Virus record (IMG/VR): IMGVR_UViG_3300043410_001892
Coordinates: 308,174-372,173 of that record
Direction: 5' to 3' (one strand)
DNA: 64,000 nt
Made by a program: the position numbers and the translations under genes
In this document: positions 40,985-61,814 of the stretch, piece after piece
Layout: each line of letters begins with the position of its first letter
Numbering within the stretch: the first letter of the stretch is position 1
The notes under the pieces: model-generated
The model's database searches: none
Seen by the model: the letters and a program-made list of their open reading frames with translations, nothing else
Told to the model about the DNA's origin: nothing

Positions 40985-41039
40985 GCTGCTCGCGATCTTG
41001 GCGGATCCAGCAGCATTAACGTCGTTAAGGGACATCAAC
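40985..41039 (+). promoter_or_regulatory. Hairpin leader of homing endonuclease, downstream of a late-type TAAATA
   Basis: GCTGCT/AGCAGC stem enclosing GATC/GATC, then a small hairpin over the AAGGGA RBS. Confidence 0.45.
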
Positions 41040-41774
41040 ATGATTATTTATCAACCATTTACATACCTTATTAAATTTAAACCAACAGGCCAAGTTTATT
41101 ATGGAGTTAGGTATGCAAAAAATTGCAACCCAACACAGTTGTGGACAACATATTTTACTTCTTCGAAACAAATAAAAAACTTAATCAAAGAATACGGAAT
41201 TGCTTCATTTCAAACACAAATACGACATGTGTTCAATACAAAAGAAGCAGCAGTTTTATGGGAATCTAAGATTCTATCAAAGTTTAATGCTGCATTAAAT
41301 CCTTTATGGTTAAATCAAAACAATGGAGATAGAAAATTTATAGGAAGTCGTAAGTGGACTGACTATCAAAAACAAATTCTTTCTCAGAAGTTATCAGGTC
41401 GGAAACTATCAGACGAAACTAAGTCTAAATTGTCAGCAGTTCACAAAGGAAAACCAAAACCTCCTATTTCTGATGAAACTCGTGCTAAATTAAAAAATGC
41501 AGCAAACAACGTTTCTGATGAAACTCGTGCTAAAATCTCAAATTCGTTAAACGGTCACTTAGTATCTACAGAAACTCGATCTAAGATTAGTGTTGCTAAT
41601 ACTGGAAAAACCCACACTGCTGAGACTAAAGCTAAGTTATCAACTATACGAAAAGGTAAACCGTTATCTGCAGAACATCGGGCAAAAATCGCAGCATCAT
41701 CAAGAGTAAGACCGCCAGTGTCAGATGAAACCCGCGCTAAAATTTCTGCATCTAAACGTAAAAATAAACCATAA
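41040..41774 (+). CDS. Free-standing GIY-YIG-type homing endonuclease with NUMOD3 repeats (Seg-like)
   Basis: FTY.I......YYGVR.......YF.SS...E..N catalytic domain; about 7 S(D/A)ETRAKIS repeats; opposite strand to upstream neighbours. Confidence 0.85.
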   Translation: MIIYQPFTYLIKFKPTGQVYYGVRYAKNCNPTQLWTTYFTSSKQIKNLIKEYGIASFQTQIRHVFNTKEAAVLWESKILSKFNAALNPLWLNQNNGDRKFIGSRKWTDYQKQILSQKLSGRKLSDETKSKLSAVHKGKPKPPISDETRAKLKNAANNVSDETRAKISNSLNGHLVSTETRSKISVANTGKTHTAETKAKLSTIRKGKPLSAEHRAKIAASSRVRPPVSDETRAKISASKRKNKP

Positions 41775-43734: not shown

Positions 43735-43856
43735 CATGATCTCATAACTGCGTCACATTACAATACGTGGCGCAGTTATCCCCTAGCTTATCTTTCAAGT
43801 CAGTTGACTTGTCCTACAAAACTTGTTATACTTTTATTTTTTCACGAGAGTATACT

Positions 43857-44108
43857 ATGAAATTCGAAATAGCTCCTATTGATACACATATACTATGTGG
43901 TTCTTATGAAGAAGCCAAGATGTATCTAATGTTTTTAGAAGTCAACGGCAAACGAAAATGGAGACTTCCTACTCGATACGAACACTGTAAATATTTTGTT
44001 GCAGGAGTTAATCTAAATTATAATGATCATATATGGGATCAACGAGATGACAATACTATTCTGTTAAATGGTAACAAACGCCGTGTAATCCCAGTGAGAG
44101 ATTTATGA
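43857..44108 (+). CDS. Mini DUF1566/Lcl-like array A gene 1
   Basis: YEEA..Y...L..NG...WRLPT..E...VIPVRD. Confidence 0.75.
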   Translation: MKFEIAPIDTHILCGSYEEAKMYLMFLEVNGKRKWRLPTRYEHCKYFVAGVNLNYNDHIWDQRDDNTILLNGNKRRVIPVRDL

Positions 44109-44341
44109 CAGAAGTTTCAGATAAGAGTGTATGGTGTAATGAAATATCGTTAGATGATGCTCGATTATATCTGTTATTCTTAAATCATCGAGGACATAAA
44201 GATTGGCGATTTCCTACAGCATTAGAACGAATGATGCTTCCAGAGTTTTCAAAAACAGGAGGGTATTGGTATTCATTTGACCTTGATAGCACTAACATGG
44301 CATCTAAAAAATATACGCTAGTTCCAGTTCGAGATTGCTAA
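44105..44341 (+). CDS. Array A gene 2
   Basis: GHKDWRFPT...LVPVRD. Confidence 0.75.
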   Translation: MTEVSDKSVWCNEISLDDARLYLLFLNHRGHKDWRFPTALERMMLPEFSKTGGYWYSFDLDSTNMASKKYTLVPVRDC

Positions 44342-44349
44342 ATAATAGT

Positions 44350-44607
44350 ATGAAAATAGAAGAATTACTAACAGAACTTACGTTTAAGGGCTCGCAATGC
44401 ACTAAAGACTGCAGTGGTCACGAAGCAGGATTTAATCACCAAGTAAGAAAAGGTACTTCAAGTGACTCATATAGTCCTCATAGTCCTAGTTTTAATAAGG
44501 GTGCAGCTATTGCAAGGGCAGATCGAACTGTAACTAGAGCTCCTCAGCCTCGCGACAAAGGTAGATTTGCTGCTAGACCAAAGCCAAGAACTAAGAAATC
44601 TAAATAG
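44350..44607 (+). CDS. Hypothetical protein with capsid-targeting-like N-terminus
   Basis: MKIEELLTE; CT.DCSGH.AG...SF..G; CTAAATA upstream. Confidence 0.7.
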   Translation: MKIEELLTELTFKGSQCTKDCSGHEAGFNHQVRKGTSSDSYSPHSPSFNKGAAIARADRTVTRAPQPRDKGRFAARPKPRTKKSK

Positions 44608-44769
44608 GCCCCGCTGTGCAAGTGTGTGATATACTTATATATATGCGCATGCTTGCACGTTCAAAAAAATTTCAATTTAATCAAGTCGTATACATTGACA
44701 ATGCACACATATATGTGTATTATAACAGTTTTTAACATAGACCCCGCTGTACACATATAGGAGAAAACA

Positions 44770-44973
44770 ATGGCAGACGATTTTGAATCAAGAGTACAAT
44801 TGTCATCAGGTTGTTTGATGTACGTTCGTACACAGCACGATGATGATCGATTAGTAGTGTTTGCATTTAAGCACGATGAGTTTAGATGTGATTTCCAAAT
44901 ATTTTATGACGATTGTAGTGACGAATTTAAAAGCTGGGTAGAACAGCCAGTTATCACTGCTGCTTCGTTTTAG
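44770..44973 (+). CDS. Hypothetical protein
   Basis: AGGAG RBS, own promoter; flanked by motif copies. Confidence 0.7.
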   Translation: MADDFESRVQLSSGCLMYVRTQHDDDRLVVFAFKHDEFRCDFQIFYDDCSDEFKSWVEQPVITAASF

Positions 44974-45007
44974 GCCCCGCTGTACACATAATTGGTAAAA
45001 TCAATAA

Positions 45008-45048
45008 TTGACATTTGAGTTTAGTTACTGTATAGTATACGGTAACTA
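45008..45048 (+). promoter_or_regulatory. sigma70 promoter with overlapping palindrome
   Basis: TTGACA-17-TATAGT; TAGTTACTGTATA-G-TATACGGTAACTA inverted repeat at 45022-45048. Confidence 0.75.
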
Positions 45049-45410
45049 CAGAAGGTGTCGCGCAAACCACATAGTAACTGCGCCCTATAACTGGACAACT
45101 GTATCACAGTGAAGGAATTGTTGAGCTGTAGCAACGACATAACCACCTACCCATTTGGATGAACATGAGATGTACCTTTACAAAACTCATTACAGGTTAT
45201 GGCCCCGCTGTACACATAAGGTTAAAAGAAGGAGTAGCACTCCTACGATTGTATATGCAGTTAGCATTGTGTATACAGTCCGCCGTCATATTTACCAGGA
45301 CGGAGCTCGAGGTACCGGATGACCGCCTCTGTAATGCTCTAATGCTAAGACATGAAAAACTCAACAAATGTTCGCCATTGGCCTTTACGGGCCAATGTGA
45401 CTTCTTAATC
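45043..45410 (+). ncRNA. Candidate large structured non-coding RNA
   Basis: Follows a strong promoter with no credible ORF; at least 8 stems and a potential 8-bp pseudoknot (see findings). Confidence 0.6.
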
Positions 45411-45533
45411 TAACAAAATATTCAAAGAAATAAAAATTCAAATTAAAATAATGAATATGAGCGAATGCGAATTTGAATTATTTTAATTTGTTTGTGAGCT
45501 GTAAGCTCGCAATTTTACTATTAGTGAGGAAAT

Positions 45534-45767
45534 ATGATTGAAATATCTGACAAAACTGCATGCAGGAAATTAGGATACAATGAAGCATGGCTGTATTGCT
45601 TAACTTTAAACCATAATGGACATAAAGATTGGCGTATGCCAGCTCAGTTTGATCATTATCAAGGTAACGACTGGCCAACTTCAACTTGGGTTGAAGTAAG
45701 TAACCCAAATAGTATTATAGATATCACTGATACTTTTGGAATAGTCCCAGTAAGAACTATTGATTAA
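45534..45767 (+). CDS. Array A gene 3
   Basis: YNEAWLYCLTL..NGHKDWRMP...IVPVR. Confidence 0.8.
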   Translation: MIEISDKTACRKLGYNEAWLYCLTLNHNGHKDWRMPAQFDHYQGNDWPTSTWVEVSNPNSIIDITDTFGIVPVRTID

Positions 45768-45833
45768 ATTATCATTTGTAAATTCTAAAAATTTATATTA
45801 CAATAATGTTTTTTAATAATCATGAGGTGCAAC

Positions 45834-46190
45834 ATGGCAAAAAAAGTTAAGTATAAATCAGCCGAAGATAAACGCCGTGCATTAGAAGCTGAAAAACAAT
45901 GGAAAGAAATGACTAAGACATATGGTCTTAGTGATAAGCCGGCTAATACAAAATCACTTAGAACAATCTCACAGAAAAAAACATTAAGTAATGTTGCACC
46001 AACATATAGAGGTAGTGATAGTAAACCTCCCAGTTTAGTTACAACTACTAAAGGTGGCGGCAGCAAAGTTACAGCTCCAAGATATACCGGTACTTTGATT
46101 AAAGGTATCGCAACGATGCATAAATCAAATGCCGTGCCAATTATTGACCAAGAGCAAGCAACTGAGATTTCACGGATGCGTAGAGGATGA
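45834..46190 (+). CDS. Conserved hypothetical phage protein
   Basis: YTGT.IKGIATMHKSNAVP......A.EIS.MRR. Confidence 0.75.
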   Translation: MAKKVKYKSAEDKRRALEAEKQWKEMTKTYGLSDKPANTKSLRTISQKKTLSNVAPTYRGSDSKPPSLVTTTKGGGSKVTAPRYTGTLIKGIATMHKSNAVPIIDQEQATEISRMRRG

Positions 46191-46399
46191 CAGAATTTGC
46201 CCCAATGGTCTTCCATCAGCTAACATATAACGATGCATGGATGTACTGTGTTACATTAGAATACGATGGACATAAGGATTGGCGTTTGCCTACTTTTTTA
46301 GAATGGTGTAATAGAAATGATTTACTTGGTTGGTATGAAAACGCGACGGTGCAAGCCGCAACATCAGTGCGAGCTGTTTGCCCAGTGAGGGATATATGA
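46187..46399 (+). CDS. Array A gene 4
   Basis: AWMYCVTLEYDGHKDWRLPT...VCPVRDI. Confidence 0.8.
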   Translation: MTEFAPMVFHQLTYNDAWMYCVTLEYDGHKDWRLPTFLEWCNRNDLLGWYENATVQAATSVRAVCPVRDI

Positions 46400-46608
46400 T
46401 AGAATTTGCCGCAATGGTCTTCCATCAGCTAACATATAGCGAGGCATGGATGTACTGTGTTACATTAGAATACGATGGACATAAGGATTGGCGCCTGCCA
46501 ACCCTTAACGAATGGAGTAATAGTAGTGAATTACTCGGTTGGTATGAAAACGCGTCGCCGGTTTTCACCCATTCTAAGCGAGCTGTTTGCCCAGTGAGGG
46601 ATATATGA
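46396..46608 (+). CDS. Array A gene 5 (recent duplicate of gene 4)
   Basis: Near-identical DNA to 46187..46399. Confidence 0.8.
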   Translation: MIEFAAMVFHQLTYSEAWMYCVTLEYDGHKDWRLPTLNEWSNSSELLGWYENASPVFTHSKRAVCPVRDI

Positions 46609-46865
46609 TAGAATTTGGTCCATTATCTAGTACAAAATTTTTGTATCGAGATGCATGGCTATATTGTCACACCTTTAATTATAATGGACATAAGGATTGG
46701 CGTATGATAACAAAAGCAGATGCATTCGTATTAGCGTTGGACGGTATAACCATCTATTCTGGTACTTGGATTGATAAAACTGTTCCTGATCACATGTTAA
46801 GTAATAATATATTTGGCGACTTTACACGAGCCCATGTAATACCAGTGAGGGATAAAAATGATTGA
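46605..46865 (+). CDS. Array A gene 6
   Basis: AWLYC..F.YNGHKDWRM...VIPVRD. Confidence 0.8.
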   Translation: MIEFGPLSSTKFLYRDAWLYCHTFNYNGHKDWRMITKADAFVLALDGITIYSGTWIDKTVPDHMLSNNIFGDFTRAHVIPVRDKND

Positions 46866-47079
46866 TTTTGCAGAACTACCAGATTATAGGTTTACTTATA
46901 ATGAAGCATTTCTTTATTGTATAACACTAAGTTACAATGGTCATAAAGACTGGAGAATGCCAACACACGACGAATATATGAATTGCAAAGAGATTGCTAG
47001 TGAATCGTTTGATGACAGTGATGACCCTAAAGATATTAAAGCTAAATATCCCATTGTACCAGTCCGTGATGTGAACTAA
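46858..47079 (+). CDS. Array A gene 7
   Basis: AFLYCITLSYNGHKDWRMPT...IVPVRD. Confidence 0.8.
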   Translation: MIDFAELPDYRFTYNEAFLYCITLSYNGHKDWRMPTHDEYMNCKEIASESFDDSDDPKDIKAKYPIVPVRDVN

Positions 47080-47221
47080 TAACTACTTGCAAATTCTAAT
47101 ATAATTTGTTATAATTATTTTTTAAACTAAATGCGAGGTTATATGATTGATTTATTTTTAACTCTAAGTTTAATTGTAGTAATGCTATATTTGATGAATA
47201 AAGTTAGTGAGATTATCGAAC

Positions 47222-47470
47222 ATGATAGAATTTAGTACGCTATCTGATCAGATGGTTGACAGAGAAACTGCCATCATGTTAGAGTTTATGTGCTGTCACA
47301 ACAATAAAAAAGGTTGGAGATTTCCAACCGATCGAGAATACATCACTCGTAAAGAAATCCCATATGGAGTTTGGTCTAAAGGGTTAGTTGATCGTAATGA
47401 TAAAAAATCAAGATTATGCTTTTTTGTGAGAGATATAAATGACGAAAACATGGAAAGTAGCAGTAGGTGA
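47222..47470 (+). CDS. Array A gene 8
   Basis: MIEF...KKGWRFPT..E...FVRD. Confidence 0.7.
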   Translation: MIEFSTLSDQMVDRETAIMLEFMCCHNNKKGWRFPTDREYITRKEIPYGVWSKGLVDRNDKKSRLCFFVRDINDENMESSSR

Positions 47471-47741
47471 TTACGTAGTAGAAGTTGCTGATTATCCACG
47501 TAACTATATGTCGTATGATGAAGCAGCTATGCACTGTTTGTTTTTGAAAATCAATAAAGCAGCTGGTTGGCGAATACCAACTGCAGCTGAATATAACAAA
47601 ATTGATGGCATCACTTGTATAATTGATAGATATCGTGATAGTGGGCTATCAGCACCATTTGATCAACGTGATTTTGAGTCAGCAATACGTCGACCATTAT
47701 TACCAGTTAGAACTATCAAAGACCCCGCTGTACACACGTAG
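47439..47741 (+). CDS. Array A gene 9
   Basis: YDEA.MHC..L....GWRIPT..E...LPVR. Confidence 0.75.
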   Translation: MTKTWKVAVGDYVVEVADYPRNYMSYDEAAMHCLFLKINKAAGWRIPTAAEYNKIDGITCIIDRYRDSGLSAPFDQRDFESAIRRPLLPVRTIKDPAVHT

Positions 47742-47779
47742 GAAAATAGTAAATAATGAATTAGCCCGGGAGGAAAGTT

Positions 47780-48040
47780 ATGAAAAAACTTATTTTATCA
47801 GTTTTAGAAACTGGTCCAAAGACTCCGATTGAATTATTCAATCTTTGCAAGTTTACAGATCCTTATGTATTTGCAAGAACCATAACTGAACTCACTATTT
47901 CTAAGAAGATTCAAAGAAATGTGATAATCCCTAACCATCCTACAGTTTATCATTCAATTACCGCAGTACCTAATAAACTATTTGAGAATCTCTCATGGGA
48001 AGATATTCGGGTAGAATACCATTTGACATCCACACAGTAA
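47780..48040 (+). CDS. Hypothetical protein (possible winged helix)
   Basis: IL..L..GPKT..EL. Confidence 0.55.
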   Translation: MKKLILSVLETGPKTPIELFNLCKFTDPYVFARTITELTISKKIQRNVIIPNHPTVYHSITAVPNKLFENLSWEDIRVEYHLTSTQ

Positions 48041-48083
48041 TACACTATAATTTAACACATTACAACAACTTTAAGGAATCTAA

Positions 48084-48302
48084 ATGCAAGTGACGCAGAA
48101 CAATAAGGGCGATACAGTTGGTATTATTAAAGACGCAGAGGAAACAGTTATACTAAATTATTCCTTTTGGGAATGCGATTGTTCAACTATGTTTATACGA
48201 CCGGTAACTATTACACATTGTCGACAATGTGGTGCTGATCGTGATGACAGTCCTATTGCAAATGATCTTCATGTACAGATTTTTGTTTATAACACTATTT
48301 AA
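48084..48302 (+). CDS. Hypothetical Zn-ribbon protein
   Basis: WECDC...C.QCG; consensus promoter at 48023. Confidence 0.65.
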   Translation: MQVTQNNKGDTVGIIKDAEETVILNYSFWECDCSTMFIRPVTITHCRQCGADRDDSPIANDLHVQIFVYNTI

Positions 48303-48314
48303 TAAGGAGTAACT

Positions 48315-49394
48315 ATGACACTCGAAGCAACTGCTATTTCAATTCTTGAAGGCGAAGAAGTAAGTCCAATTGATAAAAAAGATGCAATGGAACTTATCGA
48401 ACACTTACAAGCATGGCTGCCAAATTATCCACAAGGTTCAAATAAGTTTATTTCTTATCTACATAAGAATTTAACTCCAATTCACGCAGTCTACGGTTTA
48501 TACTCTGCAGTTGACAATGGTAGTTTAGAAATTACACATCGTAATCTCCAAACTATGATGTTGTTTGAAAAAGATCTTGGTTACTTAGTCAAACATTTAG
48601 AAAATCCAGAGAAGAAGATAAACTTCTTCAATGCTATGCTTAAAGGTACTGATATTTCGTATGTCGAGCTGGAACTAACTAGTCCGTTTATGATTCAACC
48701 AGAAGAAGAGATTGGCACTGGTACATACGAACAAACTGTTGCGATTGAAGATTTATTTGCTAATACTGAAGAAGAAGATACTACAACAGCAGCTTCGACG
48801 ACCTCAGCGCCAAGTGTATCAACTGCAACTAAATCGTCTACTAATAAAATATCAGAACCATTTAAAGATATTTTAGATACTGCTGCTAAAAAAGTACTTG
48901 GCGTAGGAGTTAAGAAGACTGATGCTGAAAAAGATCAAGAACAAGATGATCATGATGCATACTATGTATATACGCAGTATTTGTATCAGTTTACCCCGGA
49001 TGAAGACTGTGATCTTGCTATCTCAGTAGTATCGCAAAAGTTTTGGGATGACAACGGATATCTTGATGATCAACACATCTCGGAGTATTTAGAAGCGATT
49101 ATTCCAGACTGGTCCGATAACTGGTGTGAAACTATGGAAAGTGTATTTGAATACACTGGTGGTTCAACTAAGGCAGAAGCTATTGCTTATTTAAAAGCAA
49201 CTGGGTTCTTTAAAGAAGAAGAACTATTTGATGTTGAATTTAGTAAAGCAGATATCTTACTAGGTTATCTTGAAGGCCAACCTGAAGAAATAATTTCTAA
49301 GTTTCTCAAAGAGGCACTTACACATCTTGATGAAAGCCAAATTGAAGACTTAATTCAAAAGTATGAAGACGCTTGGCACGAAGAGGATGATTGA
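48315..49394 (+). CDS. Acidic hypothetical protein
   Basis: 359 aa, AAGGAG RBS. Confidence 0.75.
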   Translation: MTLEATAISILEGEEVSPIDKKDAMELIEHLQAWLPNYPQGSNKFISYLHKNLTPIHAVYGLYSAVDNGSLEITHRNLQTMMLFEKDLGYLVKHLENPEKKINFFNAMLKGTDISYVELELTSPFMIQPEEEIGTGTYEQTVAIEDLFANTEEEDTTTAASTTSAPSVSTATKSSTNKISEPFKDILDTAAKKVLGVGVKKTDAEKDQEQDDHDAYYVYTQYLYQFTPDEDCDLAISVVSQKFWDDNGYLDDQHISEYLEAIIPDWSDNWCETMESVFEYTGGSTKAEAIAYLKATGFFKEEELFDVEFSKADILLGYLEGQPEEIISKFLKEALTHLDESQIEDLIQKYEDAWHEEDD

Positions 49395-49608
49395 TATACA
49401 CGATCTAGGCATATCAACTGATTACACCACTGCATGGTTGATATGCCTAACCATGGAACACAACGGACATAAAGATTGGCGATTGCCAACATGGTATGAC
49501 TATATAAATAGTGCAGAACTACATGACTGCTGGTATGAAGATGATTTTTACACCGTATACATAGGAAAGAACGTATTTGCAGTTCGTAGCAAAGAGGCCC
49601 CACTGTAA
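49387..49608 (+). CDS. Array A gene 10
   Basis: AWLICLT..HNGHKDWRLPT...AVR. Confidence 0.75.
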   Translation: MIDIHDLGISTDYTTAWLICLTMEHNGHKDWRLPTWYDYINSAELHDCWYEDDFYTVYIGKNVFAVRSKEAPL

Positions 49609-49826
49609 TGGAAAAAATAGAAATTGCTCAAACTACTCGAAAATCCTTAACTTATGCTGAAGCACAGATGTATTGTTTTGTGTATGAAGAGAATAATATT
49701 CGTGGTTGGAGATTACCAACTGAAGATGAGTATGTAAACCACAATGAAATATGGGGTTGGGTTCAAGATGATGAACGTCAAGACGAGTACGGTACCTTGA
49801 GAGTTACTCCAGTGAGAGATTTATGA
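49608..49826 (+). CDS. Array A gene 11
   Basis: YAEAQMYC......GWRLPT..E...VTPVRD. Confidence 0.8.
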   Translation: MEKIEIAQTTRKSLTYAEAQMYCFVYEENNIRGWRLPTEDEYVNHNEIWGWVQDDERQDEYGTLRVTPVRDL

Positions 49827-50056
49827 TTGAGTTTGCCCCTCAATCACCAACCAATATGTCATTTGATGAAGCATTTCTCTATTGTTTAACACTTAACTAC
49901 AAAGGACATAAGGATTGGTCTATACCTTATAGACGAGAGAAACGCTCATACATGATAGGTACTTGGTCTATTGATGATATAAAACTGATAGAGTTTTACT
50001 ATTCATCTGATACAAAGACATCTGTATTTCCTATTAGAGGTTATTATGAATCATGA
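49823..50056 (+). CDS. Array A gene 12
   Basis: AFLYCLTLNYKGHKDW..P...PIRG. Confidence 0.8.
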   Translation: MIEFAPQSPTNMSFDEAFLYCLTLNYKGHKDWSIPYRREKRSYMIGTWSIDDIKLIEFYYSSDTKTSVFPIRGYYES

Positions 50057-50273
50057 ATACGGTATAAGATCGCCCGATCGCTTAACTTTTGACGAAGCAT
50101 TTCTGTATTGCCTTACACATAATTTTAATGGACATAAAGATTGGTATATGCCAACTTTTACTATGTGGGTATTTGATGATGTTATTACTGGCTGGCATAG
50201 TTCAGCTAAACTGCAACGTGATATTAGTTATGACATATCACGAGTTATACCAGTGAGAGATATAGATGATTGA
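50046..50273 (+). CDS. Array A gene 13
   Basis: AFLYCLT..FNGHKDW.MPT...VIPVRDIDD. Confidence 0.8.
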   Translation: MNHEYGIRSPDRLTFDEAFLYCLTHNFNGHKDWYMPTFTMWVFDDVITGWHSSAKLQRDISYDISRVIPVRDIDD

Positions 50274-50481
50274 AATTGCATATAAAACTATAAAAGACAT
50301 GGATTACGATACTGCATGGCTTTATTGTTTGGTATATGAGAAAGACGGGCATAAAGATTGGCGATTGCCTAGTCGTGACGAATACTTTAATACTGACGGA
50401 ATACATCTACATACTTGGTTTGAAAACAGAGAAGATGACACTAAATGGTGTTGCCAACCAGTGAGAGGTATAGATGATTGA
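50266..50481 (+). CDS. Array A gene 14
   Basis: AWLYCL....DGHKDWRLPS...QPVRGIDD. Confidence 0.8.
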   Translation: MIEIAYKTIKDMDYDTAWLYCLVYEKDGHKDWRLPSRDEYFNTDGIHLHTWFENREDDTKWCCQPVRGIDD

Positions 50482-50686
50482 ATTTGCTATACGATCTCAA
50501 GAAGAAATGGTTTACGACCAAGCATTTCTGTATTGTCTAACACTCGAGTATAATGGACATAAAGATTGGCGATTGCCTACAGGAATTGAATATTCTATTA
50601 CGGATGCGCTATCATTTTGCTGGTTTGAAGAAAGAAAAACCGGCGAAAGATGGGTATGTCAACCAGTGAGAGATATAGATGATTGA
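50474..50686 (+). CDS. Array A gene 15
   Basis: AFLYCLTLEYNGHKDWRLPT...QPVRDIDD. Confidence 0.8.
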   Translation: MIEFAIRSQEEMVYDQAFLYCLTLEYNGHKDWRLPTGIEYSITDALSFCWFEERKTGERWVCQPVRDIDD

Positions 50687-50891
50687 AAAAGGACCAGCAG
50701 CTGGAAAAAAACTTCATTATAGAGAAGCGTGGATGTATTGTCTTACACTCTCTTATAACGGACACAAAGATTGGCGTATGCCAAGTTACTTTGAAACTAA
50801 TTACGGGTGGAATGAACGAGATGTAATGAACCCTAATTTAGAATCGCCCTATCAATATTCAATTATACCAGTGAGAGATATAGATGATTGA
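50679..50891 (+). CDS. Array A gene 16
   Basis: AWMYCLTLSYNGHKDWRMPS...IPVRDIDD. Confidence 0.8.
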   Translation: MIEKGPAAGKKLHYREAWMYCLTLSYNGHKDWRMPSYFETNYGWNERDVMNPNLESPYQYSIIPVRDIDD

Positions 50892-51090
50892 ATACGCCCC
50901 ACCAACAACAGAATGTGTAGACTATGACACTGCTTGGCTGTATTGCGTTACCCTAGCACACGATAACAAATACGACTGGCGAATGCCAACACATAAAGAA
51001 TATGAGACTTCTCCATTTATATTAGGTTGGTTTGTAGATAGACCACAGACTGAAAATCTCTGGACTTGCCAACCAGTGCGTGATTGTTAA
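50884..51090 (+). CDS. Array A gene 17
   Basis: AWLYCVTL....YDWRMPT...QPVRD. Confidence 0.8.
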   Translation: MIEYAPPTTECVDYDTAWLYCVTLAHDNKYDWRMPTHKEYETSPFILGWFVDRPQTENLWTCQPVRDC

Positions 51091-51157
51091 ACCATTTGCA
51101 ATTTTAAATTTATACTGTTATAATATATTTTTATTTACACACCCCGCGGGAGTATAT

Positions 51158-51451
51158 ATGTCTAACGAACTTATTGAAAAATTAGCACAAGACCCAGGTT
51201 CTCATTCAGCTTACATTGAGGATTCAGAATTACGAGAAATGGCAATTGTATGGGCAGTTGTAATTCGTAATGAAACCCGACCAGATCATTATTCAGAGTA
51301 TGTAAAACGAATAGATGAGATGAAGAAAAATGAGCCATTGTTGTATAGACGATTTGCTGACTATCTAGTCGATACTGTTGAAAACGGTACACATAGCGCA
51401 GCTTGGAGTGCACCAGCAGACCGTATTCGTAGAACATTACTACCTAAGTGA
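51158..51451 (+). CDS. Hypothetical protein
   Basis: Start MSNELIEK, GGGAG RBS, early promoter at 51097. Confidence 0.65.
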   Translation: MSNELIEKLAQDPGSHSAYIEDSELREMAIVWAVVIRNETRPDHYSEYVKRIDEMKKNEPLLYRRFADYLVDTVENGTHSAAWSAPADRIRRTLLPK

Positions 51452-51458
51452 GGTAAGC

Positions 51459-51662
51459 ATGGCAATTGAACACGCGCCACGTTCTGAACATAAGATGAGT
51501 TACGAACAAGCAGAGATATACGCATTTATGTGTAACCATGACGGTAAGCGCGGTTGGCGCTTACCGACCTTTAACGAGTTTGTGGATCCTAATACATGGT
51601 ATAAAGATGCTGAGATTACTAAAAGAAAGTGGTTTGTTGCACCAGTGAGGGATATAAAATGA
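51459..51662 (+). CDS. Array A gene 18
   Basis: YEQA..YA....DGKRGWRLPT..E...APVRDIK. Confidence 0.75.
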   Translation: MAIEHAPRSEHKMSYEQAEIYAFMCNHDGKRGWRLPTFNEFVDPNTWYKDAEITKRKWFVAPVRDIK

Positions 51663-51991
51663 ACTTTGAGATATCACCAAAAACGATGGAGATACACGCT
51701 ACGTGGGATCAAGCAGTTATTTACTGTTTTGGTTTAGGAGATGGTTGGCGATTACCAACGTTGGCGGAATTACAAGAAATAACCACAATCTCTAAAAATT
51801 CCCTTAATCCTACAACAAGCGTACTAACACATGTCCCATATCATGATATGGCAAATAAATGGCATTGGTCGTCTGACGAATATGAGTATAATAACAATAA
51901 AGTCTTGTGTTTCAATTATTGGACCAATACAATGTGGGACTGCGATAAAAACAACTGTTATATTATTAGACCAGTGAGGGATATAAAATGA
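51659..51991 (+). CDS. Array A gene 19, near full-length DUF1566 domain
   Basis: TW.QA..YC..LG.GWRLPT..EL...WSS.E...IRPVRD. Confidence 0.85.
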   Translation: MNFEISPKTMEIHATWDQAVIYCFGLGDGWRLPTLAELQEITTISKNSLNPTTSVLTHVPYHDMANKWHWSSDEYEYNNNKVLCFNYWTNTMWDCDKNNCYIIRPVRDIK

Positions 51992-52194
51992 AAGCTAAAG
52001 AACTAATTAAATTATTATCACAACATCCTAACGCTGATGTGGTTATAAGTGACTATAATGGTTGGGAAACACCATTTTATGATGTCGATGCTATTGAATT
52101 CCATGAAAATAGTTATCCTGTTGGTGAAAATATTAGAAAAAGTGCCAAGCCTAATAATGGTTTGGTTACTTTCACATTGGGTAAGAGACATTAA
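51988..52194 (+). CDS. Hypothetical protein (unrelated gene within array)
   Basis: MK.KELI..L...P.ADV. Confidence 0.65.
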   Translation: MKAKELIKLLSQHPNADVVISDYNGWETPFYDVDAIEFHENSYPVGENIRKSAKPNNGLVTFTLGKRH

Positions 52195-52195
52195 A

Positions 52196-52591
52196 ATGAT
52201 TGAATATGCACCAATCGCTATTACCAAACAACACTATGACAACAGATCCTCAGTTTATTCGGATAAATTGTTTGTGGTATGGATGCCAGATAATACCAGA
52301 AGAAAAACAATCGAACTAGCCATTAAATCAGTAAGTTTATCTTGGGCTAATTTAGCACATGATGATTTGTCAGAGTTAGATTTATCAGGTCTAGATCTTT
52401 CTTATGCTGATTTATCGTTTGCAAATTTGTCAAATGCTAATCTAACCAATACGAATTTATTTCAAGCAAGTTTACGTGGAGCAGATCTTACAGGTGCATT
52501 ACTTGACAATACCAACCTACAATATGTGGATCTGTCCTATGCAACTTTAGATCATACCAACTTACACAACTGCAACTTCCATAAATTATGA
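52196..52591 (+). CDS. Pentapeptide-repeat protein with array-A-type N-terminus
   Basis: MIEYAP start, then A(D/N)LS/T pentapeptide repeats. Confidence 0.8.
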   Translation: MIEYAPIAITKQHYDNRSSVYSDKLFVVWMPDNTRRKTIELAIKSVSLSWANLAHDDLSELDLSGLDLSYADLSFANLSNANLTNTNLFQASLRGADLTGALLDNTNLQYVDLSYATLDHTNLHNCNFHKL

Positions 52592-52902
52592 ATATTGAAC
52601 TAGCCCCTTACAAATATTGGCTGATTGACACTAATTTTGACACAGCTAAAATGCACTGCTTTTTTCTTAACATTGACAATAAGCTTGGTTGGCGTTTACC
52701 AACTAATCAAGAAGCCTGTGATCTTGTTAATTTTGTTGAATCGTTAGATACTGATTTCCCAAAAGAATTACAAGAGTTTTCAGAGTATTGGTTTGATGAC
52801 GAGAGTTATGGTTTTTGGACTTTTGAAGATGAAGATCTTCATTCAAATGCAGATTTAGGCGAATTATTTACAGTAATCCCCGTGAGAGATAAAGATGCTT
52901 GA
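52588..52902 (+). CDS. Array A gene 20
   Basis: FDTA.MHC..L....GWRLPT..E...VIPVRD. Confidence 0.8.
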   Translation: MNIELAPYKYWLIDTNFDTAKMHCFFLNIDNKLGWRLPTNQEACDLVNFVESLDTDFPKELQEFSEYWFDDESYGFWTFEDEDLHSNADLGELFTVIPVRDKDA

Positions 52903-53104
52903 ACATGCACCAAGAATAGAAAAAGATATGTGTTATGATACCGCATGGCTTCACTGCCTAACACTTAACTATAATGGCCATAAAGATTGGCGATTACCAA
53001 CTCAAAGAGAATATGATAAATCTAGTATAACAATAAGTTGGTTTGAAGATAGATTACCAACACCATTACAATGGTACTGTCAACCTGTACGCGATATAAT
53101 ATAA
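52895..53104 (+). CDS. Array A gene 21
   Basis: AWLHCLTLNYNGHKDWRLPT...QPVRD. Confidence 0.8.
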   Translation: MLEHAPRIEKDMCYDTAWLHCLTLNYNGHKDWRLPTQREYDKSSITISWFEDRLPTPLQWYCQPVRDII

Positions 53105-53189
53105 TCTTTACAAATCAACAAATAATTGCTATACTATATTTTTTTAACACTACAGCAAGCAGGCCCCGCTGTACACACAGGAGCATAAC

Positions 53190-53792
53190 ATGGCAACACG
53201 TAGCGCAATTGGTTTTATGAGAAACGATGGTACTGTCCGTGCAGTATATTGTCATTGGGATGGATACTTATCACACGTTGGTAAAATCCTTATTGAGAAT
53301 TATGATTTACTTGGTGTTGATGACTTATGCGATTTAGGTGATATAAGCTCATTAGGTGAAACAATTGAAGATACTGTGTTTTACGGACGCGATCGCAACG
53401 AAGATGATGTTGAAGCACATGAGTTTGCATCTGAACAAGAGTTTGTAGATTGGTATGATGATTCTGAGTTTTTCTACTTAATAAAAGATGACAAATGGTA
53501 TGTGTCAGAACATTGCGAAGAGTTCTCGTTACTTGAAGATCGTTTAAAAGATACAAAAGTTAAGTTTACTAAGTATGTTCGTCCAGATGAAACAACAACA
53601 TCCTACAGTGCAAGAGATGCAGTAGTAGCAATGGTAGCCGATGGTGTAGTTGAACCAGTGTATATGGTTAAGTTATTGCTTGATCGTATTGATCCTGAAA
53701 CATTAGAAGCGTTGTTGAAAGAAGAATTCCACATTGACGAGATCATTCCAGAATGCTACTTTGAAGAGGAGGAAAATAATGAAATTGATTAA
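53190..53792 (+). CDS. Conserved hypothetical phage protein
   Basis: MATRS.IG......VYCHWDGY...VG..L...GDISSL...YGRDR.E. Confidence 0.75.
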   Translation: MATRSAIGFMRNDGTVRAVYCHWDGYLSHVGKILIENYDLLGVDDLCDLGDISSLGETIEDTVFYGRDRNEDDVEAHEFASEQEFVDWYDDSEFFYLIKDDKWYVSEHCEEFSLLEDRLKDTKVKFTKYVRPDETTTSYSARDAVVAMVADGVVEPVYMVKLLLDRIDPETLEALLKEEFHIDEIIPECYFEEEENNEID

Positions 53793-54009
53793 ACTAACAG
53801 AGTTAAACACTGATCCTATGGTAATACCTAACACTTATCATATACCAGTTGAGAAAATTGATTATGTTATTGAACATGAAACAGGATCAACTGTTGTAGT
53901 CAATCGTGCAGATTTAAGGGTAATTGAACCAGCTGAATATATCAATAGCATATTATCAGCTAATACTGATTTTAGTAATTTTGGAGGGTTTGATGAGTAC
54001 GTCAATTAA
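53779..54009 (+). CDS. Hypothetical protein
   Basis: Start MKLIKLT. Confidence 0.6.
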   Translation: MKLIKLTELNTDPMVIPNTYHIPVEKIDYVIEHETGSTVVVNRADLRVIEPAEYINSILSANTDFSNFGGFDEYVN

Positions 54010-54283
54010 AGTCAATGTTGTAGCTAAGGATTCTAAACCTAAAAAACCAGTAATCAAAAAACGTTTGGTTCAGGTTGATAATCATCGCATTCGAATCGCT
54101 GAAACTGATTTGCCACATAAAGGTAATGTTGACCTGCATGATCCTAAGATTAAAGAACGCGGACCTAATCAAGAATTGGTAGTGTATGCTACTGCCAAAG
54201 AAGATACTTACGAACCTGGGAGAGAATACGTCTGTTACTTTACTCTTAAAGGTAAACTTGAAGGTTACTTCACAGTCAATTAG
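53993..54283 (+). CDS. Hypothetical protein
   Basis: Start MSTSIKV. Confidence 0.6.
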   Translation: MSTSIKVNVVAKDSKPKKPVIKKRLVQVDNHRIRIAETDLPHKGNVDLHDPKIKERGPNQELVVYATAKEDTYEPGREYVCYFTLKGKLEGYFTVN

Positions 54284-54291
54284 AAGGCACA

Positions 54292-54696
54292 ATGAATATT
54301 ACATTTGCAAGTTTAAAGACAACTGGTAAAGTTGAAACAGTATGGTGTGTACTTGATCTTGGTATGTCAAATTATTATAGTGACCTAGGTTACAGAGATC
54401 ATATTCGAGATTATCTAATAGTATGGGGTAGGCGTGGTGGCAAATTACAGACTATTGTGAAACGAGGACACACTAAAATCTCTATCAATAAAGACATTTA
54501 CGATCAAGAATTTCGCGAAAATATGTGGGGTTTTTACCAAATTACTCACGGCCAAGGTATGGCTATAGCTAAACGGATTTATAAGATTCTTAAGAAAGAT
54601 TATATTCCATTTAAGGCAGATTCTCTCGAAGAGATTGATCCAAACTTACCTGAACAGCTAAACAAATTAGTATTTTGGGAGACTATGAAATTATGA
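54292..54696 (+). CDS. WGR-like domain protein
   Basis: WGRRGGKLQ...K..K.Y; paralog of 55104..55448. Confidence 0.6.
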   Translation: MNITFASLKTTGKVETVWCVLDLGMSNYYSDLGYRDHIRDYLIVWGRRGGKLQTIVKRGHTKISINKDIYDQEFRENMWGFYQITHGQGMAIAKRIYKILKKDYIPFKADSLEEIDPNLPEQLNKLVFWETMKL

Positions 54697-54875
54697 GTGG
54701 ATTAGGATATATTGCAGCTGAACTTGAACAGTGTTGTGAACTCTGTGGCAAAATTGAAGAATGTCGTCCGTATGGTCCTAATGGTGAACAAATCTGTTTT
54801 GACTGTGGTATGAAAGATGAAGAAACTACTAAACAACAGATGGCAAAGTATATCTTTGGAGTAGACAGTGATTAA
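54693..54875 (+). CDS. Small Zn-finger protein
   Basis: CELCG...ECRPYG..GE.IC.DC. Confidence 0.7.
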   Translation: MSGLGYIAAELEQCCELCGKIEECRPYGPNGEQICFDCGMKDEETTKQQMAKYIFGVDSD

Positions 54876-55107
54876 AGATAATCCGTTGCTCGATTATGCT
54901 CCACCGTTAAATAAACCTGTAGATGAAGATACCGCATTCATGTATTGTATAACACTAAGTTACAATGGTTATAAAGACTGGAGATTCCCAACAAGACCTG
55001 AATTTGGAGATACGGGTGATGTATGGTTTGACGGTGAGAACTTTTCTAATGCATCTGGCTATTGGAGATGGCGAGTTCAACCAGTAAGATCTAAAGAGGA
55101 TATATGA
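54868..55107 (+). CDS. Array A gene 22
   Basis: AFMYCITLSYNGYKDWRFPT...QPVR. Confidence 0.8.
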   Translation: MIKDNPLLDYAPPLNKPVDEDTAFMYCITLSYNGYKDWRFPTRPEFGDTGDVWFDGENFSNASGYWRWRVQPVRSKEDI

Positions 55108-55448
55108 AGATTACATTTGCAGGTTTAAAGACCTCAGGTAAAGTTGAAACGGTCTGGGTTGTTATTGAGTTAGGTACACATCAACCACAATCATGGTATC
55201 ATGATTTTGTGATTGCCTGGGGCAGACGAGGCGGCAAATTGCAGTCTATGACTCGATTAGGATATAATCAACCACATTTAGAATATAACTCTGATCGTTA
55301 CCACAGGTTTAGCACTATTGGCGGCATGATCAATAAGAAACTTAACAATGGATACAAAAGTATTGACGAAACACAGTTAGATGAAGTATATCCAGAGTTT
55401 AAACAAGATTTAGATAAACTTGCATTTTGGGAAACATTGAAACTATGA
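55104..55448 (+). CDS. WGR-like domain protein
   Basis: WGRRGGKLQ...KKLNNGY. Confidence 0.6.
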   Translation: MKITFAGLKTSGKVETVWVVIELGTHQPQSWYHDFVIAWGRRGGKLQSMTRLGYNQPHLEYNSDRYHRFSTIGGMINKKLNNGYKSIDETQLDEVYPEFKQDLDKLAFWETLKL

Positions 55449-61786: not shown

Positions 61787-61814
61787 CAGCCACACTAAGT
61801 TGAAGAGGTATACG

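Follow-up and report, generated by a model that had tools for sequence, protein, structure and literature searches.

Tandem arrays of miniature genes with a predicted C-type-lectin-like fold in an uncultured freshwater phage

An uncultured 372-kb freshwater phage carries at least 40 tandem copies of a stripped-down gene of about 70 residues with a predicted C-type-lectin-like fold, each with the same core and its own surface loop, which together look like a hard-wired library of small binding proteins whose targets are not known. The window analysed here is the last 64 kb (64,000 nucleotides) of a 372,173-bp IMG/VR contig (IMGVR_UViG_3300043410_001892). A profile HMM built from the copies and run on all six frames of the window returned exactly 22 hits (E 1e-16 to 1e-31), all on the + strand between 43857 and 55107 and 67–110 aa in length, while the next best hit anywhere had E 0.18 (Table 1). 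The count of 22 applies to the window only, as the first 20 kb of the same contig holds 18 more domains, 17 at positions 1–12.6 kb and one near 20.2 kb. The array described in an earlier note, made from the sequence alone, is real, and was understated. Similar arrays, with up to 41 copies in 11 kb, occur in a few other uncultured freshwater phages, and the arrays are stable in nature, with collinear arrays at 96–98% identity in independent aquatic samples, whereas none was found in GenBank phages, in cellular genomes or in the literature searched, and a search of 185,579 species genomes gave a single weak partial hit.

The shared motif is as the earlier note had written it. Over 121 copies from five phage lineages, the conserved columns are M-I-E-x-A-P, Y-D-x-A-x-L-Y-C, D-W-R-L-P-T-x-x-E, one W, and P-V-R-D, while the segments between them are near maximal entropy (3.7–4.0 bits) and also carry indels, which shows the constant scaffold and variable loop that the note had proposed. 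Each ~70-aa protein keeps strand 1, helix 1 (YDxAxLYC), the DWRLPTxxE turn and helix 2, one Trp, and the closing strand PVRD, and the ~50-residue part that follows ‘WSS’ in the canonical domain is replaced by a 20–30-residue loop that differs in every copy. As claimed, only copy 19 of those in the window keeps ‘WSS’, and it is also the one copy that passes the Pfam cut-off for Lcl_C/DUF1566; the short copies score 15–23 bits, on profile positions ~19–57 only. No copy has a hydrophobic stretch typical of a signal peptide or membrane helix, again in agreement with the note, and the Cys pair typical of extracellular C-type-lectin-like domains (CTLDs) is present in only 16 of 121 copies, suggesting proteins that are soluble and not disulfide-dependent.

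The AlphaFold2 model of copy 15 is confident (pLDDT 94.6, pTM 0.81), and all 50 of its best VIA-align structural matches are C-type-lectin-like folds, including MPXV A35 (Z 6.6), Bd2740 (Z 6.5), the C-terminal domain of Legionella Lcl (Lcl-CTD, PDB 8q4e; Z 6.2, 67 of 70 residues aligned) and the diversity-generating retroelement (DGR) proteins TvpA (Z 6.0) and Mtd. The nearest AFDB and ESM Atlas clusters are Lcl_C/DUF1566, with TM by query of 0.70–0.85, and Arg34 (98%) and Glu40 (89%) keep the spacing of the R338–E344 salt bridge of Lcl (PMC11162425). In natural fusions the relative orientation of the two domains was not resolved (pTM 0.64), leaving oligomerisation undecided.

Table 1. Features of the array and its surroundings, in coordinates of the 64-kb window. 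L003, L007 and L008 are labels of compared sequences.
Position	Strand	Feature	Evidence
43857..44108	+	copy 1 (83 aa), first gene after the divergent promoter region	HMM E 1.2e-22; translation
44105..44341	+	copy 2 (78 aa); ATGA overlap with copy 1	HMM E 8e-24; Pfam Lcl_C 15.6 bits; junction sequence
45534..45767	+	copy 3 (77 aa), follows the structured-RNA gap	HMM E 2e-28
46187..46399	+	copy 4 (70 aa), recent duplicate of copy 5	HMM E 7e-31; 79% DNA identity to copy 5; loop dN/dS 1.3-1.5 vs core 0.2-0.26
46396..46608	+	copy 5 (70 aa)	HMM E 9e-31
46605..46865	+	copy 6 (86 aa)	HMM E 4e-26
46858..47079	+	copy 7 (73 aa), end of a run; Val-Arg encoded GTC CGT (not SD-like)	HMM E 3e-31; junction sequence
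47222..47470	+	copy 8 (82 aa)	HMM E 8e-26
47439..47741	+	copy 9 (100 aa), divergent	HMM E 1.5e-22
49387..49608	+	copy 10 (73 aa), first of the 8-gene run	HMM E 3.5e-25
49608..49826	+	copy 11 (72 aa)	HMM E 5e-28
49823..50056	+	copy 12 (77 aa)	HMM E 6e-25
50046..50273	+	copy 13 (75 aa)	HMM E 6e-28
50266..50481	+	copy 14 (71 aa); 8-nt ATGATTGA overlap	HMM E 1.5e-31; junction sequence
50474..50686	+	copy 15 (70 aa); modelled copy; the only one with a clear DNA-level ortholog in the second 372-kb phage	AF2 pLDDT 94.6; 85.5% DNA identity to L003
50679..50891	+	copy 16 (70 aa)	HMM E 2.7e-26
50884..51090	+	copy 17 (68 aa), end of the run; Val-Arg encoded GTG CGT	HMM E 2e-28; junction sequence
51459..51662	+	copy 18 (67 aa); orthologs in L007 and L008	HMM E 4e-25; tree
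51659..51991	+	copy 19 (110 aa), full-length DUF1566 domain with WSS segment	Pfam Lcl_C 38.7 bits, above cut-off 34.9
52588..52902	+	copy 20 (104 aa), long acidic insert (net charge -16)	HMM E 1.4e-22
52895..53104	+	copy 21 (69 aa)	HMM E 3.5e-30; Pfam Lcl_C 22.8 bits
54868..55107	+	copy 22 (79 aa from GTG; a TTG at 54886 is an alternative start)	HMM E 3.7e-25
43804..43832	+	promoter-like site TTGACT-17-TATACT with TG, 25 nt before copy 1	promoter scan; sequence
47087..47123	+	TTGCAA-17-TATAAT with extended -10 motif, before copies 8-9	promoter scan; motif search
48023..48051	+	perfect TTGACA-17-TATAAT heading the operon 48084 / 48315 / copies 10-17	promoter scan
51095..51132	+	exact TGTTATAATATATTTTT promoter motif heading the run with copies 18-21	motif search
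53107..53143	+	promoter motif (1 mismatch) heading the run that ends with copy 22	motif search
50245..50274	+	junction cassette (PVRDIDD stop / MIE start); exact 27-30-nt repeats also at 50662-50688 and 50863-50892	repeat search
52196..52591	+	pentapeptide-repeat gene inside the array that starts with the family's RBS/start cassette (..GTGAGGGATATAAAAATGATTGAATATGCACC.., MIEYAP)	Pfam PF00805 65 bits; NCBIfam; translation

The organization of the arrays, which is new in this analysis, is that of translationally coupled cassettes. The longest run comprises 8 genes (49387–51090), with overlaps of 1, 4, 8 or 11 nt, and the stop of one gene overlaps the start of the next (ATGA or ATGATTGA). The Val-Arg codons of the C-terminal PVRD motif are held as GTG-AGR, providing a Shine-Dalgarno-like GAGG/GAGA 5–8 nt before the next ATG. 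The Arg codon is AGR in 121 of 137 copies that are followed by a gene, against 8 of 17 copies that are not (Fisher p 2e-4), and Val is GTG in 63% of followed copies, against 5.7% of Val codons in large genes of the window. This conserved ~30-nt junction is also where unequal crossing-over adds or removes whole cassettes: four independent assemblies of a ~91%-identical strain lack exactly one cassette, and the resulting hybrid gene switches partner inside CCAGTAAGG, the PVR codons. The exact junction repeats and the start cassette carried by the pentapeptide-repeat gene fit the same mechanism.

The claim that the runs lie behind sigma70-like promoters was confirmed in part. The overall count of promoter-like sites in the window equals that of shuffled sequences (64 versus 62.7), and is thus not above chance; however, a specific extended -10 motif, TGYTATAATATATTTTT, occurs 7 times on the + strand, 5 of them exact, and always in gaps between gene runs.

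The interpretation offered in the earlier note, a paralog library of reduced DUF1566 domains built by gene duplication instead of retro-mutagenesis, is supported, as every part of it that we could test held. No reverse-transcriptase Pfam hit was obtained among the window ORFs tested, no template-like near-identical repeat was present, and mismatches between recent duplicates showed no adenine bias; the other ~288 kb of the genome was not searched for a DGR. The one-cassette difference between strains is direct evidence of unequal crossing-over. None of the outcomes that the note had listed in advance as fatal to its reading was encountered: a C-type-lectin-like fold is predicted, the loops are less constrained than the core but not free of constraint between orthologs, and such arrays are not described in the literature searched.

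The family follows birth and death, in which loops diverge fast after duplication and older paralogs are then kept as recognisable orthologs between phages. Between-genome ortholog pairs give w of 0.14 for the core and 0.31 for the loop, whereas nearest within-genome paralogs give 0.24 and 0.78, and the excess of nonsynonymous change in loops is greater in paralogs than in orthologs (odds 1.67, p 3e-4). Between strains 3.7% apart, core pN/pS is 0.23 and loop pN/pS is 2.0 (Fisher p 0.044), although this strain-level loop excess is not above neutral expectation (binomial p 0.39). These values rest on Nei-Gojobori counts of short segments, on non-independent pairs, and on saturated dS (>1) for orthologs. 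All 22 copies here and about 100 in relatives have open frames.

Coupling these results, we consider that the analysis itself demonstrates a phage-specific, reduced, stand-alone subfamily of the Lcl_C/DUF1566 domain amplified in arrays, of which we are very confident; the cassette structure and its recombination junction, of which we are fairly confident; and, with the caveats above, its mode of evolution. What the proteins do is inferred. In this view, the runs would be transcribed from the sigma70-type extended -10 promoters, and so probably by host RNA polymerase early in infection, and the proteins would stay in the cytoplasm as a repertoire of small binders, each loop fitted to a different variable host molecule. 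We give the binder repertoire a probability of roughly 0.55. The most likely targets would be defence or other host-takeover targets that differ between host strains, but an early counter-defence or host-takeover role is no more than tentative. There is no direct evidence of expression, timing, location or binding partner, nor was it tested that the loop binds anything, or that the proteins have the roles suggested in the note (early intracellular binders, decoys or anti-defence factors). Searches of defence-related libraries gave no hits; no anti-defence library was searched. A cytoplasmic role would also be a departure from that of known DUF1566 domains, which work outside the cell as adhesin heads (Lcl, Bd2740, fimbrial tips) or on phage fibres.

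That precedent raises the possibility that the mini-domains are instead virion parts, such as exchangeable receptor-binding tips or decorations that assemble, perhaps as trimers, on collagen-like or Mtd_N fibres and widen host range. Lcl-CTD is a trimer on a collagen stalk (PMC11162425), the Bd2740 fibre tip and the DGR fibre proteins Mtd and TvpA are among the fold matches, the window encodes three collagen-repeat proteins and two Mtd_N proteins, and copy 19 weakly matches the C-terminus of a fimbrial tip adhesin. We nevertheless think this unlikely, as the genes lie on the opposite strand from the structural genes, in a block of small genes behind sigma70-type promoters; all 70 residues are used by the fold, leaving no attachment or trimerisation segment; the C-terminal domains of the fibre proteins show no family signal; and the extracellular-type Cys pair is rare. 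Similarly doubtful is a role as lectin-like cytoplasmic or envelope-directed binders for superinfection exclusion or receptor masking, in which envelope glycan precursors or surface structures would be bound to block competing phages or re-adsorption. The predicted lectin fold, the binding of sulphated glycans by the Lcl head (PMC11162425), the frequent presence of surface-modification genes in jumbo phages (PMC7824862) and an epimerase gene nearby at 38380–39189 favour such a role, but the sugar-binding long loop and Ca2+ motifs of true C-type lectins are absent from the minimal copies, there is no export signal, and forty different specificities are hard to explain by one host's envelope.

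It is less likely still that the array is a by-product, in which a self-contained cassette with a recombinogenic junction amplifies easily and most copies are neutral passengers without individual function. The junction does promote gain and loss of cassettes, turnover between the two 372-kb phages is nearly complete, and loop pN/pS between close strains is compatible with neutrality. However, none of ~140 copies examined is interrupted, the core is under clear purifying selection in every comparison (w 0.14–0.24), several paralogs persist as orthologs across phages whose synonymous sites are saturated, and no decayed remnants are detectable in the window. That the copies are targets or donors of a DGR located elsewhere in the genome is the most remote of these possibilities and is already largely refuted for the window. 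Although DUF1566 is a known DGR target domain (PMC4159848, PMC5758913) and Mtd_N domains occur in two window proteins, the absence from the window, as far as its ORFs were tested, of the signatures described above is accompanied by paralog DNA identity of at most 79% and by loops that differ in length, which DGRs do not produce.

Among known systems, Lcl-CTD and DUF1566 (Pfam PF07603) share the sequence signature (aromatic-xxA-xx-YC, WRLPTxxE, W, and VR at the end), the C-type-lectin-like fold, with the aligned residues superposed at 2.2 Å, and the lack of obligatory disulfides. The phage copies are ~70 aa instead of ~100–130, have a short copy-specific loop in place of the hairpin after WSS, are encoded in tandem arrays of dozens, and stand alone, with no collagen stalk, secretion signal or other domain; trimer formation and glycan binding were not tested. 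The variable proteins of DGRs (Mtd, TvpA and DUF1566-type targets) likewise carry a hypervariable C-terminal surface on a constant C-type-lectin scaffold, with the variable stretch in the equivalent part of the fold, but here the diversity is germline, residing in many fixed paralogs rather than in one gene rewritten by a reverse transcriptase. The best structural matches are the poxvirus A33/A35 minimal CTLDs (PDB 3k7b, 4m1g, 8xa4; TM by query 0.64–0.70), which are also pared down by loss of the long loop region; these are disulfide-bonded dimeric membrane glycoproteins of an animal virus with 12–14% identity, and there is no sign of common descent beyond the fold.

Lineage-specific expansions in large viruses, such as the approximately 35 zinc-ribbon genes of Bacillus phage G, which Iyer et al. 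called unprecedented for phages (PMC7824862), or the ankyrin, BTB or MORN families of giant viruses, similarly place dozens of paralogs of one small domain within one viral genome, with fast turnover between relatives. The domain here is different, that survey found no C-type-lectin-fold (FGS) domains in 224 jumbo phages, and the present copies are strictly tandem, translationally coupled cassettes with a defined recombination junction. Finally, stand-alone ~100-aa Lcl_C proteins of the same family occur in uncultured phages, in ESM Atlas clusters that are 100% viral and in a contig (L009) where thirteen family hits are scattered and which carries clamp-loader (Rad17/AAA), dCMP deaminase, SegE-type GIY-YIG endonuclease and PhoH genes. 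These are full-length domains, scattered rather than packed head to tail and not reduced to the 70-aa core, and copies 19 and 20 and their L007 orthologs belong to this longer type.

The + strand across the array region is packed with small ORFs. To examine these systematically, a profile was built from the candidate ORFs and searched against every stop-to-stop segment in all six frames of the window, and exactly 22 segments matched (E 1e-16 to 1e-31), all on the + strand, with the next best hit at E 0.18. The trimmed proteins are 67-110 aa, and neighbouring genes overlap by 1, 4, 8 or 11 nt, mostly as ATGA or ATGATTGA, with a longest uninterrupted run of eight genes. The observation made in the earlier note, of 22 miniature DUF1566/Lcl genes sharing a common motif in this interval, is correct in its coordinates, count and motif. 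The window forms the last 64 kb of IMGVR_UViG_3300043410_001892, a viral contig of 372,173 bp, and the start of the same contig continues the array with 17 more domains, one gene being a two-domain fusion, and a further copy. This genome thus has at least 40 copies, spread over about 40 kb across the arbitrary contig ends. It carries ribonucleotide reductase, collagen-repeat tail-fibre proteins, Mtd_N proteins, a lytic transglycosylase and a GIY-YIG homing endonuclease, and reads and contigs holding it come from freshwater, aquatic and microbial-mat metagenomes. Among 50,697 GenBank phage records, megablast of the region and tblastn of a mini copy gave no match, and tblastn of a canonical 97-aa copy gave one weak hit, so that no cultured relative can be used.

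Coordinates of the array, its regulatory sites and neighbouring features
Feature	Sequence	Position	Strand
22 family genes	window	43857-55107	+
Longest uninterrupted run, eight genes	window	49387-51090	+
Copy 19	window	51659-51991	+
17 further domains	start of the same contig	1-12.6 kb	
Further copy	start of the same contig	near 20.2 kb	
Perfect TTGACA-17-TATAAT	window	48023	
Extended -10 motif TGYTATAATATATTTTT, seven sites	window	47107, 51116, 53127, 56010, 56254, 59899, 60692	+
14-mer CCCCGCTGTACACA, five sites	window	44742, 44975, 45203, 47723, 53164	+
ORF-free gap	window	44974-45533	
TTGACA-17-TATAGT promoter in the gap	window	45008-45036	
Polynucleobacter-1 RNA (RF01718)	window	45055-45199	+
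Terminator-like hairpin	window	45492-45512	
Polynucleobacter-1 RNA	L007	7389-7533	array strand
Polynucleobacter-1 RNA	L008	12830-12975	array strand
Polynucleobacter-1 RNA	L009	8906-9056	array strand
Pentapeptide-repeat gene	window	52196-52591	+
Two paralogous genes flanking copy 22	window	54292-54696 and 55104-55448	+
GIY-YIG plus NUMOD3 homing endonuclease	window	40998-41774	+
Two proteins starting with Mtd_N	window	7795-9009 and 19873-21459	-
Shikimate dehydrogenase	window	61800-62627	+
Two-cassette fusion	L005	8862-9296	
Two-cassette fusion	L006	2310-2738	

A comparison with the Pfam DUF1566 model had been proposed in the earlier note as a check on family membership. Copy 19 scores 38.7 bits on Pfam PF07603 (Lcl_C/DUF1566) over profile positions 22-117, above the curated cut-off of 34.9, whereas six of the eight short copies tested reach only 15.6-22.8 bits on profile positions ~19-57 and two had no hit; the score criterion by itself thus leaves the placement of the short copies undecided, and they are linked to copy 19 through the family HMM. 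The signature of the family, an aromatic-xxA-xxYC helix, (D/G)WRLPTxxE, WSS and VR in the last strand, is nonetheless present over 121 copies (A18 97%, Y21 83%, C22 66%, W33 98%, R34 98%, P36 97%, E40 89%, W52 89%, V72 90%, R73 92%), with WSS reduced to W in the short copies. The conserved Arg34 and Glu40 have the spacing of the Lcl R338-E344 intradomain salt bridge (PMC11162425). In the short copies the W of WSS is kept (89%), but the following ~50 residues are replaced by a 20-30-residue loop; by motif and fold they are a reduced DUF1566 domain.

The absence of a predicted C-type-lectin fold had been named in advance as grounds for rejecting the assignment, but such a fold is predicted. AlphaFold2 on copy 15 with the 22-copy alignment gives pLDDT 94.6 and pTM 0.81, with strand-helix-turn-helix-loop-strand topology. 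Foldseek against the PDB ranks the minimal C-type-lectin-like domain of poxvirus A33 in the first six places (TM by query 0.64-0.70), and VIA-align against 48,161 chains returns C-type-lectin-like folds in all 50 top rows, including MPXV A35 (Z 6.6), the Bdellovibrio Bd2740 C-terminal domain (6.5), Legionella Lcl-CTD 8q4e (6.2; 67 of 70 residues aligned, rmsd 2.2 A), TvpA (6.0) and Mtd (4.2). The nearest AFDB clusters and ESM Atlas structure matches are Lcl_C/DUF1566 proteins (TM by query 0.70-0.85). Individual Z and E values are modest for a 70-aa model, and Foldseek E-values against PDB, BFVD and Swiss-Prot are weak (0.5 or worse), so the fold call rests on the uniformity of the VIA-align, AFDB-cluster and Atlas matches. 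The long loop region of canonical Ca2+-dependent C-type lectins, with its EPN/QPD and WND motifs, is absent or replaced, and Cys in both helix 1 and the last strand, the pair that would correspond to a CTLD disulfide, occurs in only 16 of 121 copies. Only single chains were modelled, and neither trimer formation nor glycan binding, as in Lcl-CTD, was measured here. NCBIfam and PADLOC searches gave no functional lead for the mini copies.

When 121 copies from the window genome and four other phage loci were aligned to the family profile, the core columns were 83-98% conserved, whereas columns 8-14, 38-39, 41-51 and 53-68 had 3.7-4.0 bits of entropy out of a possible 4.3, with indels at two loop positions. 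The proteins are mostly acidic (median pI 5.1) and have no hydrophobic segment fit for a signal peptide or membrane helix, in line with the lack of signal peptides reported in the earlier note; they are best read as soluble proteins that fold without disulfides. A search of the rest of the genome for a reverse transcriptase or template repeat had also been suggested beforehand, as a test of diversification by a diversity-generating retroelement (DGR). No reverse transcriptase family was hit among the window ORFs scanned against Pfam or PHROGs, the other ~288 kb of the genome not having been examined. The window has no template repeat nearly identical to the variable region: paralogs are at most 79% identical at the DNA level and the only exact repeats are the 27-30-nt gene junctions; the mismatch spectrum of recent duplicates shows no adenine bias, and the loops differ in length. 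The interpretation offered in the earlier note, of a paralog library with a constant scaffold and variable loop built by gene duplication instead of retro-mutagenesis, is supported by these data from the window, although binding by the loop was not assayed.

The genes have a cassette architecture that is new here. The conserved C-terminal Pro-Val-Arg-Asp is encoded as CCA GTG AGR GAT, and the next ATG begins 11 or 13 nt after the first base of the Val codon, which puts a Shine-Dalgarno-like GAGG/GAGA 5-8 nt before the start. At the ends of runs, where no gene follows directly, the same residues are encoded GTC CGT, GTG CGT, GTA CGC or GTT CGA. Over all loci, Arg is AGR in 121 of 137 copies followed by a gene, against 8 of 17 not followed (Fisher p 2e-4), and Val is GTG in 63% of followed copies, although GTG makes up only 5.7% of Val codons in the large genes of the window. 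So the last strand of each protein doubles as the ribosome-binding site of the next gene. The same GTGAGGGATATAAAAATGATTGAA cassette heads a gene inside the array for a 131-aa pentapeptide-repeat protein (PF00805, 65 bits; nearest NCBIfam models Alr5209, HetL and Qnr types), giving it the family's MIEYAP start.

How the array grows and shrinks could also be traced, a second new finding. Four independently assembled contigs of a ~91%-identical strain (L032-L035) carry three genes where this genome has four; their first gene has the body of cassette A and the tail of cassette B, the switch lies inside CCAGTAAGG, the Pro-Val-Arg codons, and exactly one cassette is gained or lost. This is the footprint of unequal crossing-over at the conserved junction. 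A suspected extra family copy in L032 turned out to be a small membrane protein that is present in both strains, the real difference being the loss or gain of cassette B. Copies 4 and 5 are a recent tandem duplicate with identical junctions. Natural fusions of two adjacent cassettes into single ~140-aa proteins occur in many sequence clusters (for example proteins P0003, P0004 and P0014, and genes in contigs L005 and L006), with the PVR-x-x linker running straight into the next MIE-type strand; an AF2 model of one shows both halves folded, but its pTM of 0.64 does not fix their mutual orientation or show whether neighbouring domains pack. The array is otherwise stable, as contigs from three other samples tile it collinearly at 96-98% identity.

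On a tree of the 121 copies the terminal branches are long (median 0.88 changes per site), and copies from different genomes are interleaved. The two 372-kb phages share a single clear DNA-level ortholog, copy 15 at 85.5%, whereas the array-bearing contigs L003 and L006 share many, and copies 18, 19 and 20 have orthologs in L007 and L008, two further contigs with arrays. This is birth-and-death evolution on an old family. Neutral evolution of the variable segments had been put forward in advance as an outcome that would count against a binding library, and Nei-Gojobori counts were used to examine it. Fifteen between-genome ortholog-like pairs, for which dS is saturated, give w 0.14 for the core and 0.31 for the loop; 12 nearest within-genome paralog pairs give w 0.24 and 0.78, with several loop values above 1; and four genes compared between strains 3.7% apart give pN/pS 0.23 and 2.0. 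The nonsynonymous excess in loops is larger in paralogs than in orthologs (odds 1.67, p 3e-4). For the strain comparison, loop against core gives Fisher p 0.044, but the loop is not above neutral expectation (p 0.39). Because the segments are short, the pairs are not independent and dS is saturated, these are indications and not proof of positive selection. The core is clearly constrained, while the loops change fast, fastest soon after duplication, yet are not free of constraint in long-kept paralogs.

The claim that the runs lie behind sigma70-like promoters held only in part, as the overall number of such sites equals that in shuffled sequence. The gaps between runs, however, carry a shared motif, TTGCAA/TTGACA-17-TG-n-TATAAT-ATATTTTT. 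The conserved extended -10 element TGYTATAATATATTTTT occurs seven times on the + strand between 47 and 61 kb, five of them exact, usually with TTGCAA 17 nt upstream, and marks the starts of gene runs throughout the small-gene region; a perfect TTGACA-17-TATAAT heads the operon that contains the 8-gene run. Together with the small, tightly packed, same-strand genes, this supports transcription by host RNA polymerase, hence probably early. This is an inference, not a measurement: one freshwater metatranscriptome holds 7% of the sequence words of the 8-gene run, but its reads were not mapped. The 14-mer CCCCGCTGTACACA occurs five times exactly and only on the + strand (0.13 expected), at gene ends or just before ribosome-binding sites, with two copies bracketing the structured RNA described below; its function is unknown, though a processing or regulatory site is possible.

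Whether such arrays are routine and already described had likewise been raised as a potential objection. A profile search of 1.84 billion cluster representatives finds 3,923 proteins at E <= 1e-3, which fall into giant multi-repeat cellular DUF1566 proteins that match only the N-terminal half of the profile, many 65-90-aa singletons that match the full profile, and two-domain fusions; all named relatives are ‘hypothetical protein’ from metagenomes. The 22 copies hold no conserved 7-mer, and searches with two subfamily alignments returned the same few contigs. Arrays occur in a handful of other viral or metagenomic contigs, some of them partial loci, with 25 copies in L003, 28 in L006, 20 in L007, 10 in L008, 16 in L011 and 41 in the 11.4-kb L012, and copy number and content differ between relatives as in other viral lineage-specific expansions. 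Another contig (L009), with clamp-loader, dCMP deaminase, SegE-type endonuclease and PhoH genes, has 13 family hits, and the called genes there with Lcl_C hits are about 98-111 aa and scattered; the Atlas also holds all-viral clusters of ~100-aa Lcl_C proteins. A scan of one genome for each of 185,579 species found only one weak partial match. In the literature, DUF1566 in phages appears only as a DGR target, and we found no description of these arrays. A ~35-copy zinc-ribbon expansion in phage G was called unprecedented (PMC7824862), and the expansion of 40 or more copies here matches or exceeds this, the largest reported in a phage.

Sequence and computation establish the family, fold, array, coupling and crossover mechanism, whereas what the proteins do is inferred. 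Forty intact, core-constrained copies of a fold that nature repeatedly uses as a diversifiable binding scaffold, each with its own loop, are best explained as a repertoire of small binders. A cytoplasmic, early role against variable host targets fits the promoters, the lack of export signals and disulfide dependence, the high turnover and the neighbouring pentapeptide-repeat gene; pentapeptide-repeat proteins include DNA mimics. The main rival is a virion-tip or decoration role, suggested by what DUF1566 does elsewhere and by the collagen-like fibres. Two window proteins start with the Mtd_N domain of the Bordetella phage tropism determinant, one continuing with collagen repeats and the other with a pectate-lyase-like beta-helix, and are probably a tail fibre and a tail spike, but neither C-terminus shows the Lcl_C family signal, so the idea that the cassettes form part of the fibre protein found no support. 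Gene position and the absence of any attachment segment also argue against a virion role. Neutral amplification is unlikely, given the intact frames and the constrained core.

The C-type-lectin fold is the scaffold that DGRs use to make huge binding repertoires, and here a group of phages appears to reach diversity on the same scaffold by a different route, through dozens of fixed paralogs in self-propagating cassettes. A more far-reaching possibility, which we consider unlikely although it would be of high interest if true, is that a phage keeps a germline repertoire of about 40 minimal lectin-fold binders as the gene-array counterpart of DGR mutagenesis, formally like the C-type-lectin receptor clusters of natural killer cells. 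In this view each paralog would neutralise or recognise a different variant of a host defence or surface component, and cassettes would be gained, lost and re-diversified by crossover at a junction that is at once protein motif, ribosome-binding site and recombination site. This would be a new, general counter-defence or host-range strategy, and a natural source of 70-residue binding scaffolds. If the targets are host defences, the family would add a new class to the counter-defence catalogue; if the copies are virion tips, it would be a new way to widen host range. The 70-residue form is about as small as this fold gets, which may interest protein engineers, and the triple use of one 30-nt junction as C-terminal strand, Shine-Dalgarno site and crossover site gives a clear, testable mechanism for how such arrays grow.

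The 560-nt ORF-free gap inside the array holds a full-length Polynucleobacter-1 RNA (RF01718, 61.1 bits against a cut-off of 37), behind a TTGACA-17-TATAGT promoter and before a terminator-like hairpin. The same RNA lies on the same strand, inside or beside the Lcl_C arrays, in L007, L008 and L009. The whole ~450-nt gap is about 90% identical between window, L007 and L008, although the flanking genes are saturated, and a 40-nt block is invariant in all four loci. The motif's known range is Burkholderiales and fresh or estuarine water (PMC2864571), which is a weak hint at the host. The part 3' of the Rfam motif folds with 17 of 49 predicted pairs supported by compensatory changes, and this is probably a longer structured phage RNA.

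Other genes surround the array. A GIY-YIG plus NUMOD3 homing endonuclease (SegE-like) lies just upstream of the divergent promoter region. Two paralogous genes (134 and 114 aa; 81% DNA identity over the first 73 nt) flank copy 22, and neither has a Pfam, NCBIfam or PADLOC hit. The phage also encodes a complete shikimate dehydrogenase (three Pfam domains), an unusual auxiliary metabolic gene.
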